A stretch of DNA of 63,852 nt, counting the filler, from Reticulomyxa filosa (lineage: Eukaryota > Protista > Foraminifera): assembly GCA_000512085.1 (NCBI GenBank). It is 15 parts of 15 records of this genome, joined end to end, with 100 filler letters (N's around TTAATTAATTAA, not from the genome) between each part and the next. Parts side by side here need not be neighbours in the genome. Positions count along the whole stretch, not along the records: positions 47,784 to 53,823 come from ASPP01020114.1; 14 more parts are not named here. One strand, 5' to 3'. The notes beneath the pieces are model-generated. The model did not search any database. It was not told the origin of the DNA and saw nothing but the letters and a program-made list of their open reading frames with translations. Below are positions 740-53,823 of the stretch, in pieces (the first letter of the stretch is position 1; every line of letters begins with the position of its first letter). Both the position numbers and the translations under genes were made by a program.

Positions 740-1015
740 AAAAATAACATTACAATCTTTTTTTCTTTTTTTCATTTTTTTTCTTTTCTCTTTTTCTTTT
801 CTCTTTTTTCTATTTTTCTTTTTTTCATCATTCTTTTTTATTATCATTTTTTCTTTCATAAATAACAATTTTTTTTCTCCTCTTTTTTTTTCCTACTTTT
901 TTTTTTCCATTTTTTTTCTCCTTTTTTTTTCTCCATTTTTTTTCTCTTTTTTTTTTCACATTCCTTTTTATTTATTAATTTTTTCCCCTTACCCACTTTC
1001 AACATTTTTAAAAAA
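740..1015. repeat. T/C-rich low-complexity tract
   Basis: Runs of TTTTTTC/TTTTTA; generates the spurious poly-Lys minus-strand ORFs. Confidence 0.7.
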
Positions 1016-3080
1016 AAACATTTTTGGATCTTCTTGTACCTGCACACAACACAAACAAAATTATTATATATTTTTAAGAACATCAAAAGAATAAAATTAA
1101 CTTTGTGAACGTCGTTCGGTCTCCAATATCAACTTTTTTTCTGTGGTGCAAACTTAACAATATTTTTTTTTTATTTATAGAATGTGTATGTAAATAAAAA
1201 CAAACAAACATAAATACAATTTGTTTATGTGGTCGGGGGAAGTCCTATTTATAACATAAACACAATATATTATTTTGACAAAAGATAAACAGTTTACACA
1301 TAAGTATAACAAACCGTTGGCAATTTTTTTGGACACTGGGTTGACATTCAACCCCATTTCTTTTTTTGGTGTGTGCGCTGTATGGAAGAAGAAAAATAAC
1401 GGTTATCGATGGTGGCGGATTGCTATACACGATACATACATAATGTTACTATTTTTAAAAATATAATATAAAAAAACAAACCATATATACTCCTTTCGGA
1501 GACGGGGGTTGGATTCTACATCCTTATTTTTTATTATTGTCATTACAGTCGTTGCCATTTTTTTTCAATACACATCACATACAACAACACAATCATAAAT
1601 TATTTTGTGGATCTTTTAAAGGTTATTCAAATAAACGTATACATATACGTATATCAAGAAAATTGTTATATATATCAAATAATTTTGTATTAGTTGATCG
1701 TGCTTGCTGACCGTTATTTGTTGTCTCTTGCGCTGTCGTTGTAGTCGGCACTATCATTTGCCACATGCTGGCCATTTTGTGAGACTACTGTGCCCATTCC
1801 AACATTTGCAAACTGGACGTTCAATCATCTGATGCACTAGTGTGCATGAGCAAAATGCCACATTCACACCTTGCTGTCAGCAAATGTGCAGTCAGGTTAT
1901 TGATTGCATCCACTTGCAATATTGACTGTTGTATTTTTATTTTTTTATATTGAATTGAATACATATTACTATTGACAAAGTTTCATATATCTATGTCTTT
2001 TTTTTATTTATTTTTTAATTGAAAGAAAGATATAATGGAATTAACTGAAATAGACATGTTCTGGAGTTGATTTGATTGTTGTAGTGATTGTTGTTTGTGA
2101 AAATTAGATTGATTGTGGATTTGGTGTGGATTTGTATGTGGTTGTGCACGTTGTGTGGCCTTAAGTAATGAAGTACAAATTTGTAACGGCCAACTTTGAG
2201 AGACATGACTTGGGCAATCGGACAAATATTGAACGGCGTGATCATACTCGTAACGCCAGCCCAAGACTCCAAACTTCTCCAATACAATTAAAAAAGGGTT
2301 TCCGACTACCAAACTGCACAACTTTGAGAAAAAAGAAATTTGTAATTTTTTTAGAATGTCAATTGGTCAATTGATATTTGCTTTTTGTGAATATTTGCTA
2401 TTTTTTTGTTCAGATTTTTTTTAACATTGAGAAGAGATTTACCAGACAAAGCAAAAACACTTTTTGAAAATTTCTTGCCAAAAAGTAAAAAGGAATTACA
2501 TTACAAAACAGTTGTTTTGAAGTTGATGCGACAAAAAAGTACGAAAAAAATTCTTCCATCTCAAACAAAAATATATAAGTGTTGTTGTCTTTTTCTTTTT
2601 CATAATTTCGTTTAATTTTTTCATATCCTCATTACTTAATTCGATAATGGTATTTGATGTGCAAAGACCTGAGTATTTTCTTTCATTCGCTCCACAGGAT
2701 GATTTGACCAAAGAGAGGATACGGTGTTGAATGCACCAAGAATTTATTTATTTCGGCAAAACAAAAGTAAATTATCAACATACACTTAAAAAAGAAAAAT
2801 GTAGAAAAGTTTAACAATAAGTATGAATAGATTCAAGACATTATAGAATGGTATATTATGTCAATAATAGATTATTGAGTTAACTTTTGAACTTATCTAT
2901 ATTTGCTTTTTTCACTTTTGTTGATTCAAATTTTATTTAATTTTTAATTCTACTATTTTTTGATAATTATGTGTGTATGAATGTTTTAATTATTACGTGT
3001 TCAAACTTGATTTACAAATTTATCGTTTATTTGGCTTGTTTCTTAAAAAAATTTTTAACAGTTTATAAAAAACAAAATAG

Positions 3081-4744
3081 TTGGGTGTTCGGCAGAAGTT
3101 CAGATGAAAAGTTCATTAAAAAAATCATAAGCAGCCCCCTTTTGTTCATTAACAATATCACATTCAAAAACTACAAAGGTTTGATCAATGCAAGAAAATA
3201 TGAAAAAAATTGCAGTTTCCCACTTCCTGGACGTGGGCAGGACTGGGAAAAAGATCCGAACTTTCAACGACAAGCAGCTTACACAGTGCGTTTGTGCGGA
3301 TATTATTTCACAACATCAAAAAAAAATGATGTTTCTCAAGCAGGAAGTGATCGATACTGTTACGTTCCGCGTAAAGGCCCTGCTTCATTTCCAAGACTGA
3401 AAACCAATTTGAAAGCACTTATCGGAGTAAATCTGGGCGACGGTTTCGATAAAGTTTTGTTTTGATTTGATTTTTCTTTCATTGCAAAAAAAAAAAAAAA
3501 AAAAAATGTAATCCACGACAAAATCAATATACGTATACACATACAAAAATGTCCAATAGATGCTGAAGTGAGCTGTCTTTTGATGATAGGAGCTGTTGAT
3601 AAAGAAGAGCGCAGCCTTCGCGGCAAAAACAGAAGAGTTTGTGAAGATAATGGAAGACCAGTTCAACAAAGTTGAAACAAACGAAGAAAACAAAGAGACG
3701 GATACAAAGAGTAATAGCGGCGTCAACGACAGTAACAGCAAAGAAGGAACAAAGTTTGTGACCTTTCGCAACTCTTTGAAGAAAATTGCAAATGTGGCAT
3801 ACCCGGGACCCCAGCCGAAATATAACAAATTTGAAATCGACGTCATTCGAAAAGGGCCAAAGCAGATCCATTTAGAAATTGTGGAAAAGTTGGATGTCGA
3901 AGAGAGTCCAGAGTCGTTGCGGCCGAAGTTTTACGGACGTCGGTTTGAAGCGTTGGCCTTCGATCTCCCAAACGAACAGTCCTCATCACAAGGACATGCA
4001 AAAGATAGTACGGAAATGCCGTCAGACGTAATCAAAGACACCGAGCTGGTTATGATTTTTGATTGCAAGTTGAACAACCACAAGTAAGTTGATAGATTTA
4101 TATATACATAACGTATACAAATATATATTTGTATGCGTATAATCTTAAACCTTATTTTGCACGCAAAGATAATGACGTTTTGTTTCTTTCACTGCATGCA
4201 AAAAAAAAGGCTAATGATGGCTGCAGAAATTGATGGCATCGATGACAACAACGAATTAGTTGAGGTCAAGTCAACGAAGTGGACTAGTCATGAGAACTCA
4301 TATGACAAGGATCATTACCACGGAACTCATCATCATTCCACTTCTCATCAGACACATCGATCTTGGAAACCTTACAAACACTTTGGCTCCGACTCTTCTC
4401 GCCATCACAAATTCCATCCGCTCGACCAAAAACATTTGCCCCGCTTCAAAATAATGCAGTTTTGGGTTCAAGCTAATTTTGTTAATTGTGAGCGCTTTGT
4501 TGTTGCTTGGCGTGATGCCGACGGCAAGCTTGTTGATATCTCGTTTGACACATTGACTAATTATCGTAGAAAGCTGCGTGCTGCACCTACTGTTATCATG
4601 AGCTTCGTTGACCATATTTTAACCTTTATTGATGCCCACTGCACTGAGCAAAATACTTTATATAAACTTTCTTACACTGCTCCATTCAAAGAAATTGAAC
4701 TGTTTCAGTGCACTTCCACGCCGAGTGGACAAAATTCAGTCTAG
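3081..4744 (+). CDS. DXO: DXO/Rai1/Dom3Z-family decapping exoribonuclease (5' end unresolved; introns 3454-3589 and 4084-4209)
   Basis: Spliced reading gives family motifs in the correct order: 'GVNLGDGFDK', 'FVTFRNSLKKI', 'YGRRFE', 'AEIDG', 'ELVEVKS', 'KIMQFWVQA...VVAWRD..G.L'. Both GT-AG introns keep the frame. Confidence 0.85.
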
Positions 4745-47783: not shown

Positions 47784-47989
47784 TCTATATCACGTTTCAA
47801 TAATATCAAAATTGTATTATATATCAAATAATTAACATGTTTTTACTTTTTCTTTTTGACAAATTTTTTTAAAATAAAAATAAAACAATGTTTAAGCTAT
47901 TTCAAGTATTGCATTGCATAATGCTTGTGCTGCATTCAGTTTCTGAAAGAAATGCATACTAAATATACAGCAAATGCTAAAATTTAAAA

Positions 47990-48225
47990 AAAAAAAATGG
48001 AACTAAGTTATACCTTGTTACAAGTTGTTTTAGTTTATTATTTGACATAATTTTTATTTGAATAACGCAATAGCTAGAATAAATGATGATTATTGAATTT
48101 TAAAAAAATAATTTTTTATTTAAATAAACAAAACTGATTAAAAAAAATAAAAAATAATAAAATTTAAATAAAATGATAAAAATTTTTTTTGGATTGAAAA
48201 TATCAAAATAATTGATTTGCAATTT
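47990..48225 (+). repeat. Diverged direct repeat, copy A (copy B at about 50200-50465)
   Basis: Colinear shared blocks AAAATGGAACTAAGT, TATTTGACATAATTTT, ATAAACAAAA, TAAATAAAATGA, TGAAAATATCAA, AAAATAATTGAT.TGCAATTT. Confidence 0.7.
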
Positions 48226-49696
48226 GATCTGAAAAAAAGTATTGCGTTGGTGTTATTGGAACTTAAATAACAAAGTGATTAGAAAAGAACAATGGTACAA
48301 CGGATCTTGGATGAGACTGGAACTAAGTTTAGAATTTAGTTCAAATGTAGTGTTGAGAGGAAACAGTTGACATATGAATATGCATTGAACAGTTTGATTA
48401 GAGAAGTAGATGTTTGTGCTCTTACAGTGATGGAAAAGTAAAAATGCTTTTATGATCGTTTTATAAAGATTATCTTGTTTACAATAGATTTACTACACAT
48501 TTAATCAAATAACAAAATAATATAATTTTTGTTGAATAAAATACATAAAATAGAAATTTTAACTCGAACTAAAAAGATTATAATTTTTATTTTCTAAGGA
48601 GAAAAAAAAGATAATAATATGTTAATAATAGTTGAATAAAATGACATTAAAAATCTCTTTCCTTTGAAATTCATTGGCTTAGTGATATAAATATTTATCT
48701 TTCTTTAAACAAAAGATATACTCAAAAATAAAGTGATAATAAAAAAAAACAATAACATTTTTATTGTCAATAATTTGGACATAATATTCATTTATTTTTC
48801 TTAAATTAAAAACAAAAAAATAACTTTTAAATACTTTTGTAAATATTATTAAAATATAACATCTGTTAATATTATACAATTATCCAATATATGAAGTAAT
48901 TATTTATTGTTTAATGACAAAGATCTAAGTTCTTATCATTGAAAAAATTAATACAAAAATATTTATAACAATGTTTTTTTTTTATTATCAATGAAAATTA
49001 AAAATATTATTATCTGATAGTGAAGAAATTACAAAAAAAAAAAACAACATTTGCCTGATGATATTAACTCGAAAAATTCATCCAAATTTTATTCAAAGCT
49101 TTTAGATTTATCGTTTGATACATTCAACAACACAATTATCTATTTTTTAAACTCTTTTGGTTTTTATTCTGTTAAAGTAATTAAGACAATTTTATAATTT
49201 TCACAAGTCTCTGAAAGCAAATCTCACTATATTCTTTTCAATTTTTTCATTAATCTCGTTTCACGCTAGTAATTCCAAAATCAAAATAATGAATGCAATA
49301 CTGCTAGTATTATAATTTAAATACAGTTTTTTAAATAATTTGGTGACTATTTTCTTTTTTCATTGTATAATCATAAATCTAATAACAAATAATTACACTC
49401 AAAACACATCAAATAAAATTTTTATAATTGGAAGAGCTCTTAAAAAGGGCGTGGTTCCATTTTTTTTTTTTTTTAATCTGTCATCAATTGTTGAGTTCGA
49501 TATTTTCAAAGTTTTGTAAAGTAAATTTTTAATTTCGTGCATGTGGAAGAGGTCAACTGCAGGAAACAGTTAAAAAATATGCATTAGTCTGACTATGTAT
49601 TTTTTGTAAAAGTTCTTTTTGTTTTATCAATTCTTTTTTTTTGAAGCATTCAAAAATATATAAGAATTCATGAAAGCAAACATATAATTTTGAGAC

Positions 49697-49892
49697 GTCA
49701 GCCAGAAAAGAGTTCGCACTAAATGTAATACGAAAGTGCTTTTTTGCTCAAATAGCCTGATTTTCAACAAACAAGTAAATTAAAACAAATCAAAGAGAAA
49801 TGACACGAAAAAGAGGAAAAACAAAACAAGGCAAAGTGAATAATGTTGTAAAAGAAGTTTAACCCACTGGGGGTTCCTCGGGTCCTCCCGAG
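49697..49892. repeat. Dispersed block-conserved element, copy 2 (inverted relative to copies 1 and 3)
   Basis: GTCAG, GTTCGCAC, TGTAATACGAAA (49724-49735), 98-nt A-rich spacer, AAGTGA, TTGTAAAAGAAGTTTA, ACTGGGGG, hairpin CTCGGG..CCCGAG. Confidence 0.7.
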
Positions 49893-50199
49893 TTCAAGCC
49901 TTTAGAATATGGACTTGTACTACATAATGTGACAAATATTTTTTTTCTGATGAAAAAATCAATGTTTTGTAAAAAAAATTTTAATTTTTCTAAGCGTACC
50001 ATCTTCGAACGCAAACCTGCAACATACAATTTCAAAACTGATTACTTATTGTGATTTCTTGTTGTGACAACAACTAAATAACTAGTAGCACAATTTTCTT
50101 CTACTTTTTTCATAAAAAAACATGAATGTCTAATTCAGAATATATCATGTGACCAAGCTTATAGTTTGTTGTCAAAAGACAAGCATTACATCTTCAAAA

Positions 50200-50465
50200 A
50201 TAAAAAAAATGGAACTAAGTACACCCTTGTAATTGACTATTTGACATAATTTTCATTTGAAAGAACAAATCAGTAGCACAATACTAAAATGTATAGCCAT
50301 TGTTGAGCTTAAAAAAATATTTTTCTATTTACATAAACAAAAACTGTCTCATTTTTAAAAACAGGTTAAAAAAATTAAAAATAACACACAATCTAAATAA
50401 AATGACCCACAATTTTAATTAATGAAAATATCAAGTTTTTAAAAAAATAATTGATATGCAATTTA
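50200..50465 (+). repeat. Diverged direct repeat, copy B, just upstream of the fucosyltransferase
   Basis: Same blocks as copy A at 47990-48225. Confidence 0.7.
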
Positions 50466-50528
50466 ACATATTATTGGTTTAAGTGTCAGTTTACGAACAC
50501 AAGACTCCCGTAATTTCTACCAGCAATA

Positions 50529-52197
50529 ATGAGGTTTCGCCCTTTTGTTCAAGTTGACTCGCCTCCACAGAAAACCACAAAAAATGTTGATTTTTCCTCA
50601 GATGTATCTGAAATCAATTCTAAAAAATATCGACCAAGAGCGCTCCAAGTGGCGGCCGTGAGCGCGGTGTTAATTATACTGTTCGCGCTAATCAGTTTAC
50701 TGTTGGAAAGTGAGCCCACGAATGCAGAAGACAAAAAAGATGTGAGCAAGTTGCTCAAACAAGCAAAGCTGGAGTACAAGCCCGTTCACTGGTTAGTCCA
50801 AAAGCAGACAGTGAACGAAATAAATACAGTAAATGAATACTCAATAAACGATAAAAGCGAATGGCCAGAATATCTGAAAGTTGAGCCGAACAAAGTTTTT
50901 TTTTTTTTTTTTTAAGGATAAAAAAAATTTTATTTTTTTTTTAACATTACACAAAAATGAAAGAATAGTCCTTTAGCTAAAAATCCTCGGTATGAAGACA
51001 TAGACATAGTAATACTATACAAATCAACAGTGTTTGGCGGTAGGGCCGATAATTCGTTTTTGCGAAGCGACTTTAAAACATATGTTTGCAACATTACGAA
51101 TGACAAGGACCCGTCGAATGGCCACGAAGATAGTCCAGGAAAGCCATTGCTGAAGGACGTGAAAGTATTGTTGACAGCGGACACGAACTTGATGGAATAT
51201 GCACACGGCTATGTATATCACGGCCCGGATGTACCTTACGGACGTGAACTAAGTGAAGGGAGCAAAGAAGGCAAGCGAGTGAGGATTTACCATACAATGG
51301 AATCTCCTGCGCTCACCAGTGTATCTCTCACGCTTGAATCGGTTGCGCAGCAGTTTCAGTTGTTGATGAGCTATCACTTTAAAAGTGACATTTTCTTGCC
51401 TTATGTTGGACGTGGCACGTTGCGCCTGTTGGTAGATCGGCCGATCCTGGTACCTTTCCACGAAAAAAACTCTGAGTATCCTCTGGCTTGGATCGGAAGC
51501 AATTGCAATGCGCAGAATGGAAGGCAGGCTTATCTTGGTGCCTTGTTCAAACACATTCCAACCCATAGCTATGGTGGATGCTTGAATACAATTCGAAAAT
51601 CGGTATATATGTATGTATACGTATATTGTTTTTTTAAAAGAAATTCCTTTTTTTTTTGTTTACGTAAACTTTAATTCATTTTTTATTTTTAAAAAAAAAA
51701 AGGTCCCTCGTGGTGGAGAATCAATGCTCAAAATAATATCGCAATACAAATTTTATATTGTAATGGAAAACTCAAACTGCGAAGACTATATCACTGAAAA
51801 ATTGGGGAGTGCGATAATATCTTCCACCGTCCCTGTCGTCTTTAGTATCAATGGCAGTCTCCCCAATTATGATCGGTATTTGCCCGAACACTCGTATATT
51901 AACGCGTTCGACTTCCCGTCGGCAAAGCACTTGGCCGAGTATTTGCTGAAAGTCAGCCAAAACGAAACCTTGTACAACAGTTACTTGTGGTACAAATTTG
52001 AAGCAATGAAGTCCAACAAGAGGAAGGAACAAATTTGGAAAGATGACATTTTAAAAAGATATCTTTACAAAGAAACCAGAAATCATTGGTGCAGGGCTGC
52101 TAGTAGTATTTTCAATTTCTTATATTATAATAGTAACAAAACATTGCATGCTGACAATTCTTGTCAGCGCAGTAGAATCATGACTGATTTTATATAA
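50529..52197 (+). CDS. Alpha-1,3/4-fucosyltransferase (GT10), type II membrane protein; introns 50895-50963 and 51603-51702
   Basis: N-terminal TM; 'TMESP', 'MSYHFKSDIFLPY', 'AWIGSNC', 'SYGGC', and GT10 motif 'YKFYIVMENSNCEDYITEKL'. Confidence 0.92.
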
Positions 52198-52535
52198 ATT
52201 CTTGGTTGTTGATTTAATGGGTTTTGATGTTGTCTTTTTTTTTCCCCTCTTTATTTGGAAATGAGAGCCTCAATGTATTTTAATCTTGTGCCTTTGTCTT
52301 GTATTTTTTTTCTTACCAAACGGCAAATTATAATTGGTTTAGTGTGTTAAAAAATTTCTAATTAACAGTTAAACCTTAAAACTCATAGCTGTTGCTATCG
52401 TCTTGTTATCTTCCCTTTGCTTTTTTATCTTTAAAGTATTCAATAACAGGAACAAGCACTCTGTTCCGTTTTTTTTGACATGTACAATTCGTTGAATCTC
52501 AAGGGAGGGGAAAAGAAAGTGTTAAAACTGATTGA

Positions 52536-53690
52536 ATGAGTGAAAGAATAATGTCAAGTCAGCAGTCATCAATGGGTGACAATCCGAGGCGTCATCGTTG
52601 GCGCTATCTGTTGCCCAATCGTCAACAGAGTGCCCCAATAACATTTGAAGAATTCCAACAACTGTTTAACGAAGGAGTGCTAACGAAAAATAGTTGGGTG
52701 TGGCATTACAATTACACAAAAAACAAATGGACGAAAATAGCAAATCTGCAACAAGTATGGAACGATTTGCAATGCAACCGCTATGAAAGCAATGCAGTGA
52801 TGTCATCTGAAGAAGGCGAAAGACAAGAAACAAAAACAAATGAATATGAGGAAATGACAATTGCAAATGAAAGTTACAAAAGGAGCGAATACAATCAAAA
52901 CAATACGAGCAGCGTCATCAAAATGGACGAAAGAGGAAAAGAAAATGGAAGTGCAAAAAGCAAAAAAATGGATGCTATCGTGAGTCCTCAGTTTCAAATG
53001 GACTCCAAGGAAGCGCTATACAAAAGCATGATAAATACAATGGAAGCCAAAAGCAGAGGGGACAAAAACATGGGAGCCGACGCAATGGATGTATTTTCCA
53101 AGTACATTACGTGCTATGTTTGTCATATTCAATGACAGAGGGAAGGGTAAAGAAGAGGAGGAACACAGGCATATATGTATATGACGTGTATGTATACAAA
53201 TAACCACCTTGTGTAATTATTATTGGGTGGATTGGGGGGGGGGGGCTTAAAAGTGGCGAATCAAAATTGCGTAATGGAGAACTTTCGTTTGAAAAGAAGA
53301 GGAATAACAATGACAACGATGAAGATGATGATGAAGAGATTGTCGGTGAACGAGTTAAGTATAATTTGTTGAAAGAGAGAACAAAATTACATATGTATAT
53401 AAATATACATATGTACACGTATATAACTATGAAATGTGATTTACATAAAGTCGAAATCAGTGGATGAACACTCGCTGAGTGACACAAAGGGTGGCAGTGA
53501 AACGGACACGGACTTGAACGAATTCGAAAAGGTGAAACTGTGTACATTCGATATTCGATCGACGAACAAGTGATCCAAGGAATGTTTAATCAACATCGCT
53601 TTTTCAAAGAGAAAAAGCAATTGGAAATCGTATTTGAAAACGGAGAAGCGAGTGGTTTGACACCAACGATCCCCGGATTTTCAGAGTTTG
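52536..53690 (+). CDS. GYF_2 (DUF4339)-like N-terminal domain protein, probably continuing into PDZ domains across the gap
   Basis: 'WRYLLPNRQQSAPITFEEFQQLFNEGVLTKNSWVW...W..I' fits GYF_2. Last exon 'KQLEIVFENGEASGL' resembles a PDZ start. Frame break at 53527-53530. Confidence 0.6.
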
Positions 53691-53783
53691 GTATCGTGCA
53701 TTTTGCGTTTTATTTGTTTGTTTGTTTGTTTGTTTTTTAATATCATTTGAATTGATTTCGAGGGAGTGTTGTTAATATCCGTG

Positions 53784-53823
<40 letters not shown>

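Follow-up and report, generated by a model that had tools for sequence, protein, structure and literature searches.

The window analysed here is a stretch of 63,852 nucleotides of Reticulomyxa filosa DNA, in which positions 47784–53823 (6,040 bases) make up the contig ASPP01020114.1 (assembly GCA_000512085.1). Two genes are annotated on this contig, both on the + strand: a GT10 (alpha-1,3-fucosyltransferase family) gene and, 3′ of it, the gene for the protein P0006. The piece is AT-rich overall, with a GC content of 16–25% in its left half and 35–47% over the genes. The interval 47784–50528 carries no annotation, and it is here, at 49697–49892, that the element examined in this work resides. 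The GT10 start codon lies 637 nt 3′ of the element end, on the same strand.

A preliminary description of the window had proposed that this site is one of three copies of a dispersed non-coding element built from ordered conserved blocks, a free spacer and a hairpin of variable sequence. Each of the blocks and spacings claimed for the copy at 49697–49892 is present in the sequence as described, and a further block, 1b, can be recognised immediately after the conserved 12-mer (Table 1). The TCAAAT that ends block 1b lies 26 nt after the start of the 12-mer. The ordered combination GTCAG..12-mer..AAGTGA has an expectation of 0.00 in shuffled sequence. With two mismatches allowed, the 12-mer alone should turn up about 1.6 times in the window by chance, and thus the information sits in the combination of blocks. 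The right end of the element forms an island of 65% GC (49861–49900, 40 nt) between flanks of 26% GC, and GC-rich hairpins such as that at 49877–49892 occur twice in the 6-kb contig, against 0.15 expected. Runs of T are common in DNA that is 32% T, so the T8 run downstream of the element is by itself no evidence of a transcription stop.

Table 1 Features of the locus, of the element copy at 49697–49892 and of the additional R. filosa contigs
Feature	Position or length	Strand	Remark
GT10 fucosyltransferase gene	50529–52197	+	two introns; Pfam
P0006 gene	52536–53731	+	annotation
GTCAG block (inside ACGTCAGCC)	49697–49701	+	22 nt 5′ of the 12-mer
GTTCGCAC block	49712–49719	+	common to copy 1 according to the preliminary description
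12-mer TGTAATACGAAA, with TATA-like TGTAATA	49724–49735	+	sole match in the piece at 0–2 mismatches
Block 1b GTGCTTTTTTGCTCAAAT	49736–49753	+	newly recognised; ends in Inr-like TCAAAT; aligns to L004 1027–1044
A-rich low-complexity spacer	49754–49833	+	12-mer to AAGTGA, 98 nt
Block 2, AAGTGA	49834–49839	+	read from sequence
Block 3, TTGTAAAAGAAGTTTA	49846–49861	+	read from sequence
ACTGGGGG	49866–49873	+	read from sequence
Small hairpin AACCC/actgg/GGGTT	49861–49875	+	minus-strand call of a terminator scan
Perfect 6-bp GC-rich hairpin CTCGGG/tcct/CCCGAG	49877–49892	+	adjoins the small hairpin
B-box-like GTTCAAGCC	49892–49900	+	read from sequence
T8 run, possible Pol III-type stop	49939–49946	+	78 nt after block 3; read from sequence
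L001	6.6 kb		carries a GT10 paralogue
L004 (ASPP01028774.1)	9.7 kb		carries a P0006 paralogue
L005	1.4 kb		carries another P0006 paralogue
L004 12-mer TGTAATACGAAT	1013–1024	+	one substitution
L004 block 1b CTGCTCTTTTGATCAAAT	1027–1044	+	T-rich, TCAAAT block
L004 A-rich spacer	1025–1116	+	92 nt
L004 block 2, AAGTGG	1117–1122	+	
L004 block 3, TTGGAAGAAGAGTTTC	1131–1146	+	13 of 16 positions of the consensus TTGTRAA.AGAGTTTA (optional A included)

An additional copy at positions 1013–1146 of a different R. filosa contig, L004, bears out the proposal that these ordered blocks belong to a dispersed family. This contig belongs to 17.7 kb of other R. filosa DNA, comprising three contigs reached through protein look-ups that found four R. 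filosa proteins; Kelch-like protein matches came from outside R. filosa. L004 was sampled for its paralogue of the downstream P0006 gene, and so the sample is not fully independent. Two copies, at 49697–49892 and in L004, were read directly; the data on the other two are those of the preliminary description. Local alignment of the two readable copies gives a score of 65, compared with 29.7 ± 3.3 (maximum 44) for shuffled queries and 30–46 for other real loci. The composite pattern of blocks appears in none of 500 dinucleotide shuffles of the 17.7 kb, which indicates that the family is real and probably abundant.

The two copies are approximately 85% identical over 35 nt around the 12-mer and approximately 60% identical from AAGTG to GTTT (about 33 aligned columns). 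The substitution within the L004 12-mer means that this block is not invariant, contrary to what had been supposed. Furthermore, L004 has no GTCAG at a comparable distance (the nearest lies 70 nt upstream), the GTTCGCAC block is missing, part of the sequence 3′ of the 12-mer is repeated in tandem just 5′ of it (GGTGCTTTTTT, 998–1008), and roughly 17 extra nucleotides follow block 3. This copy gives the impression of decay and rearrangement.

One copy in about 18 kb of other R. filosa contigs agrees with the density of about one per 20 kb put forward earlier, and one copy per 18–20 kb in an assembly of 102 Mb implies thousands of copies. Repeats have been reported to make up 30.5% of the R. filosa assembly (PMC13746701). 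No copy of the element is present in L001, in the 580-nt region upstream of the P0006 paralogue in L005 or in the contig of P0051 (47% GC). A scan for blocks 1 and 1b across genome and viral contigs, from collections that hold no foraminiferal genome, gave no match. A single metagenome match to 12-mer..AAGTGA..TTGTRAA falls inside a bacterial sigma-factor-like gene and is attributed to chance, as are A-rich matches in L001 and L002, the latter inside a TBCA coding exon. A near-12-mer, TATAATACGAAA, with one mismatch at about 4484–4495 on the minus strand of L001, was also treated as chance: it has no partner blocks, and 0.2 such matches are expected. It lies approximately 95 nt upstream of an unannotated same-strand ORF or exon (MDTNTNANTKTKKEK..., ending at a GTATGT donor), a position that fits a TATA-like reading of the 12-mer.

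The A-rich spacer between the anchors had been described as lacking alignable sequence, and this is borne out. The spacers of the readable copies align with a score of 54, and unrelated A-rich R. filosa windows score 57, 55 and 53. Spacer homology, suggested by the local alignment of L004 with 49697–49892, was consequently dropped as no better than that of other A-rich windows. The spacer is a low-complexity A-rich tract, and because such tracts slip, alignability would be lost without any need for a ‘free spacer’ design. As the preliminary description stated, the spacer sequence is not demonstrably homologous between copies, but the spacer length is less free than implied: three copies have 92, 94 and 98 nt, and the remaining one has 68 nt.

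The proposed conservation of the hairpin structure is not borne out. L004 keeps four of the 11 base pairs, two of five in the counterpart of the small hairpin (49861–49875) and two of six in that of the GC-rich hairpin (49877–49892), and has no stable fold there; its positions 1128–1215 fold worse than 195 of 200 shuffles. At the other copy, 49848–49935 fold mildly better than shuffles (z = -1.9, with a range of -1.2 to -1.9 for the region), and longer stretches around the element on either strand fold no better than shuffles. Covariation between 49697–49892 and L004, a comparison of two sequences only, does not rise above shuffle controls. The sequence ACTGGGG forms a stem arm in copy 3 according to the preliminary description, but here it falls within the loop and 3′ arm of the hairpin at 49861–49875. 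Because its role differs between these copies, there is no helix in a fixed register, and the ‘sequence-variable hairpin’ is better described as self-complementarity in a GC-rich tail.

Pairing around the 12-mer, between GCAC (49716–49719) and GTGC (49736–49739), is no better than in shuffles (z = -0.56) and is absent in L004. L004 also carries a perfect 10-nt inverted repeat, GCTCTTTTGA at 1029–1038 and TCAAAAGAGC at 1152–1161, which links block 1b to sequence immediately past block 3. At the other copy, 49737–49750 and 49948–49961 form a weaker equivalent (79%). The L004 repeat could be chance in AT-rich DNA, or it could be a long-range stem or inverted repeat.

Taken as a family, the copies lie on unrelated contigs and keep two anchors, and neither the spacer nor the hairpins are kept. 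The interpretation first placed on this pattern is sound in that the family is real and dispersed and has two well-kept anchors, but the argument that the blocks reflect selection is weak: L004 breaks the hairpin and alters the 12-mer, the spacer slips, and the 12-mer is subject to ascertainment. Specifically, its near-invariance is partly a product of the search, because the copies were found via the 12-mer and copies that had lost it would be invisible. By our own estimate, a 12-nt window with 47 of 48 bases identical over four copies is quite likely if sites in the non-repetitive parts are about 85% identical to their ancestor, and it is not unusual with anchor identities of about 70–85%. 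The block pattern is compatible with the uneven neutral decay of an interspersed repeat.

The reading that we tentatively prefer, and to which we give somewhat less than an even chance, is that the element is an uncharacterised, non-coding, decaying interspersed repeat, probably derived from a mobile element. Such a repeat would be about 175–200 nt long and would most likely be derived from a mobile element that is not autonomous, or be part of a larger element; we know of no autonomous partner for it. In its left anchor, the 12-mer TGTAATACGAAA would lead into T-rich sequence with TCAAAT at the end, and the middle of the repeat would be an A-rich tract of about 70–100 nt that replication slippage alters, so that alignability is quickly lost. 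The right anchor would be AAGTGR-N6-8-TTGKRAA..AGAGTTT, followed by a GC-rich tail that may often fold on itself owing to its GC richness. Copies would have spread by transposition or retroposition, and the block pattern would reflect uneven decay together with ascertainment, not selection for a cellular function. Against a mobile repeat speak the negative results on inverted repeats, tails, flanking repeats and a Helitron end given below, the like orientation of both readable copies to the next gene, the persistence of a GC-rich island (65% in 26% GC DNA) in an AT-rich setting and the clustering of spacer length at 92–98 nt in three of four copies.

An Rfam search of both strands at E ≤ 10, covering the whole piece and, with laxer filters, 49560–50060, returned only noise far below gathering scores, and L001, L004 and L005 gave no Rfam match. 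ARAGORN found no tRNA in the piece or in these three contigs. The B-box-like GTTCAAGCC fits a T-loop, with only three T-stem pairs that can be drawn by eye, and an upstream A box is absent as read from the sequence. A C/D-box snoRNA candidate at 49943–50043 (TGATGA at 49948, CTGA at 50037; snR47 model, 20.9 bits against a gathering score of 61) is probably noise, having no terminal stem and no L004 counterpart. Resemblances to U2 snRNA and to Alu/7SL were dropped for want of Rfam support.

Where similarity between the two readable copies ends, a search revealed no terminal inverted repeats. Candidate direct repeats on the flanks (TGCTTTTT in L004; GAGTTC or TTTTGTAAAA at 49697–49892) are short and rich in T and do not reach significance. 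In these two copies, too few to define the termini, a MITE finds no clear support. No terminal poly-A, A-rich or simple-repeat tail is present at the element ends. As for a non-LTR retroposon, L004 lacks the left blocks and has the 8-nt flanking repeat TGCTTTTT, which is expected by chance. The element resembles dimeric SINEs of the Alu type in being short, non-coding and dense and in having two arms with an A-rich linker that varies in length and sequence, but it has no tRNA-, 7SL- or 5S-derived head, terminal poly-A or clear target-site duplications, and its arms are unrelated.

In LINE/SINE pairs of the stringent type, such as UnaL2/UnaSINE1, a stem-loop at the 3′ end is recognised by the reverse transcriptase. 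The GC-rich stem-loop near one end of our element is similar, as are the left loss in L004, which recalls a 5′-truncated retroposon, and the 8-nt repeat; differences are that L004 has lost the hairpin, that there is no terminal short-repeat tail, that no partner LINE is known, and that the flanking repeat is T-rich and chance-expected. Helitrons insert between A and T, and their 3′ hairpin is normally the best-conserved part of a family and is followed within about 10–12 nt by a terminal CTRR. The element likewise has a GC-rich hairpin near the point at which similarity between copies stops. However, the hairpin is its least conserved part, and no CTRR occurs within 10–15 nt after it in either copy (the sequence reads TTCAAGCCTTTAGAAT here and TTTTGCTTTTTCAACG in L004), and a Helitron is not supported.

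The foremost alternative, possible although we consider it unlikely, is that the copies are a family of independently transcribed small non-coding RNA genes. With block 1 (the 12-mer) as promoter, transcription would pass across the A-rich tract and the AAGTGA/TTGTAAAAG motif and stop at the GC-rich hairpins; in the version put forward in the preliminary description, blocks 2 and 3 would be the promoter, and the RNA would start near GTTTA and stop at the T8 run. Consistent with a promoter, TGTAATA precedes the Inr-like TCAAAT by 26 nt at 49697–49892 and by 28 nt in L004, but this TATA/Inr reading depends on short motifs in AT-rich DNA. Both readable copies are intergenic with no overlapping gene model, and the rarity of GC-rich hairpins in ASPP01020114.1, the T8 run 78 nt past block 3 and the mild folding excess of 49848–49935 point in the same direction. 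Against such genes stand the lack of any Rfam family at E ≤ 10 and of a tRNA, the missing stable hairpin in L004, where the region past block 3 is about 60% similar with indels, and the distance from the 12-mer to blocks 2–3, which at 68–98 nt is unlike the fixed PSE/TATA geometry of snRNA-type promoters.

A comparison with snRNA-type and Pol III type-3 promoters (DSE-PSE-TATA in animals, USE-TATA in plants, DUSE in Dictyostelium class I RNA genes) shows both likeness and difference. Ordered blocks 5′ of a short, variable, GC-rich hairpin-forming sequence and a downstream T-run are shared features. In contrast, the element is not followed by any known small RNA, its block spacing differs by as much as 30 nt, its downstream part decays in L004 and the motifs are unrelated. 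In its most specific form, which seems a good deal less probable than small-RNA genes in general, the copies would be thousands of genes for foraminifer-specific RNAs of about 150 nt, with L004 as a pseudogene. TGTAATACGAAA...TCAAAT would drive them as a TATA-like/Inr-like block, and the RNA would begin with an A-rich part that varies, continue with a conserved AAGUGA/UUGUAAAAG motif and close with a GC-rich hairpin that would protect its 3′ end.

Improbable to a similar degree is a cis-regulatory module, or a leader exon, of a downstream protein-coding gene that was inherited by gene or segment duplication. Each of the two readable copies has its next gene on the same strand, with the ATG 667 and 576 nt further downstream. 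This position could also fit a regulatory role, and with two copies it could easily be chance. The L004 copy lies upstream of the gene for P0008, a paralogue of the gene at 52536–53731 and the one for which L004 was sampled; anchor identity of about 70–85% resembles the 73% DNA identity of the paralogous coding region, and other intergenic DNA cannot be aligned. On ASPP01020114.1, however, a complete GT10 fucosyltransferase gene sits between the element and the paralogous gene. There is no copy in the 580 nt upstream of the third paralogue in L005, where the short intergenic region makes absence less than decisive, nor on L001, the contig of the GT10 paralogue. At one copy per about 18 kb, moreover, a chance copy on a 9.7-kb contig is likely (about 40%), and a leader exon would be too divergent between copies for a shared spliced leader.

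Spliced-leader (SL) trans-splicing exists in one rhizarian, Paulinella, and the SL-I and SL-II SL RNA genes of Paulinella micropora are, like the present element, small multi-copy units in which a short conserved stretch is followed by GT and a stem-loop (PMC6053224). An SL RNA gene family would have ...TTGTAAAAGAA as the end of the exon, with the GU donor (GTTTAA) next to it and then a hairpin in the intron and a run of U. The layout is loosely like that of SL RNA genes, GT follows block 3 in both readable copies, and R. filosa introns on ASPP01020114.1 begin with GTTTTT or GTATAT. The putative leader nevertheless differs strongly between copies (AAGTGAATAATGTTGTAAAAGAA versus AAGTGGTAAGGGTTTTGGAAGAAGA, about 60% identity over about 33 aligned columns), and no clear or canonical Sm site can be read between the stems, which leaves this explanation very improbable. 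Equally improbable is the second candidate of the preliminary description, a modular site in the DNA that would serve replication, chromosome breakage or the organisation of chromatin: its block, AT-spacer and block layout is all that recommends it, neither the sequence nor any tool result points to such a site, the fourth copy (L004) decays in an ordinary manner, and we know of no programmed DNA elimination in Reticulomyxa.

Among foraminiferal genomes, that of R. filosa serves as the main reference; hardly any annotation exists for its repeats or non-coding RNAs. Masking and annotating this fragmented assembly, as well as dating its repeat expansions, would become easier with a defined repeat family that can be found by a simple signature. 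If the copies were transcribed from their own promoter, they would provide a promoter motif and a lineage-specific small-RNA family, each the first known from a foraminifer. The present evidence favours an ordinary interspersed repeat, and hence a modest value.

Other repeats are found in the vicinity. A direct repeat of about 250–280 nt, 67–74% identical and 2.2 kb apart (47986–48225 and 50198–50464), brackets the element region, and its second copy ends approximately 65 nt 5′ of the GT10 start codon. At the start of each copy an A-run leads into TGGAACTAAGT, and A(n)TGGAAC occurs a third time, inverted, at 49454–49484; the A-run/TGGAACTAAGT motif is absent from L001, L004 and L005. This direct repeat could be a local promoter-region duplication or the remains of terminal repeats, and a reading of it as long terminal repeats was examined and not supported. 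TTGTAAA occurs on the + strand at 49514, 49604, 49846 and 49967, that is, four times within 450 nt, and five times on the + strand of the contig against 1.7 expected. A 10-nt direct repeat, TTTTGTAAAA, is present at 49602 and 49965, within which neighbourhood 49506–49535 and 49959–49988 are 83% similar over 30 nt. The clustering of TTGTAAA may reflect local composition or a recurrent motif.

The GT10 gene encodes a protein of 499 amino acids and has short introns with donors GTTTTT and GTATAT. In the last exon it shares 80% identity with RFI_17060, its R. filosa paralogue on L001, and relatives at 61–73% identity are found in ENA, Logan and NCBI metagenomic or unannotated assemblies (L002, L007). 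P0006, P0007 and P0008 form a small R. filosa-specific family (52536–52740, L004 1723–1951 and L005 580–804), and an exhaustive search returned these three close members only. They have in common an N-terminal domain of about 65 amino acids (RHRWRYLLPN...WVWHY..W) with weak GYF_2/Kelch-like similarity, and the GenBank names Mov34/MPN and TFIIF alpha given to the family look like low-complexity artefacts. The P0006 introns at 53160–53200 and 53380–53435 contain (TATRTA)n-like palindromic repeats that give rise to spurious mir-297 and mir-1277 matches. The GenBank model of P0006 appears to read through at least one intron (peptide ...HMYINIHMYTYIT...), and similar tails in P0007 and in L004 ORFs suggest a systematic annotation artefact in the R. 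filosa assembly. Finally, long T homopolymers stand at contig ends (T40 at 53784–53823; L005 1–27), which suggests that assembly breaks in R. filosa fall at homopolymer runs.
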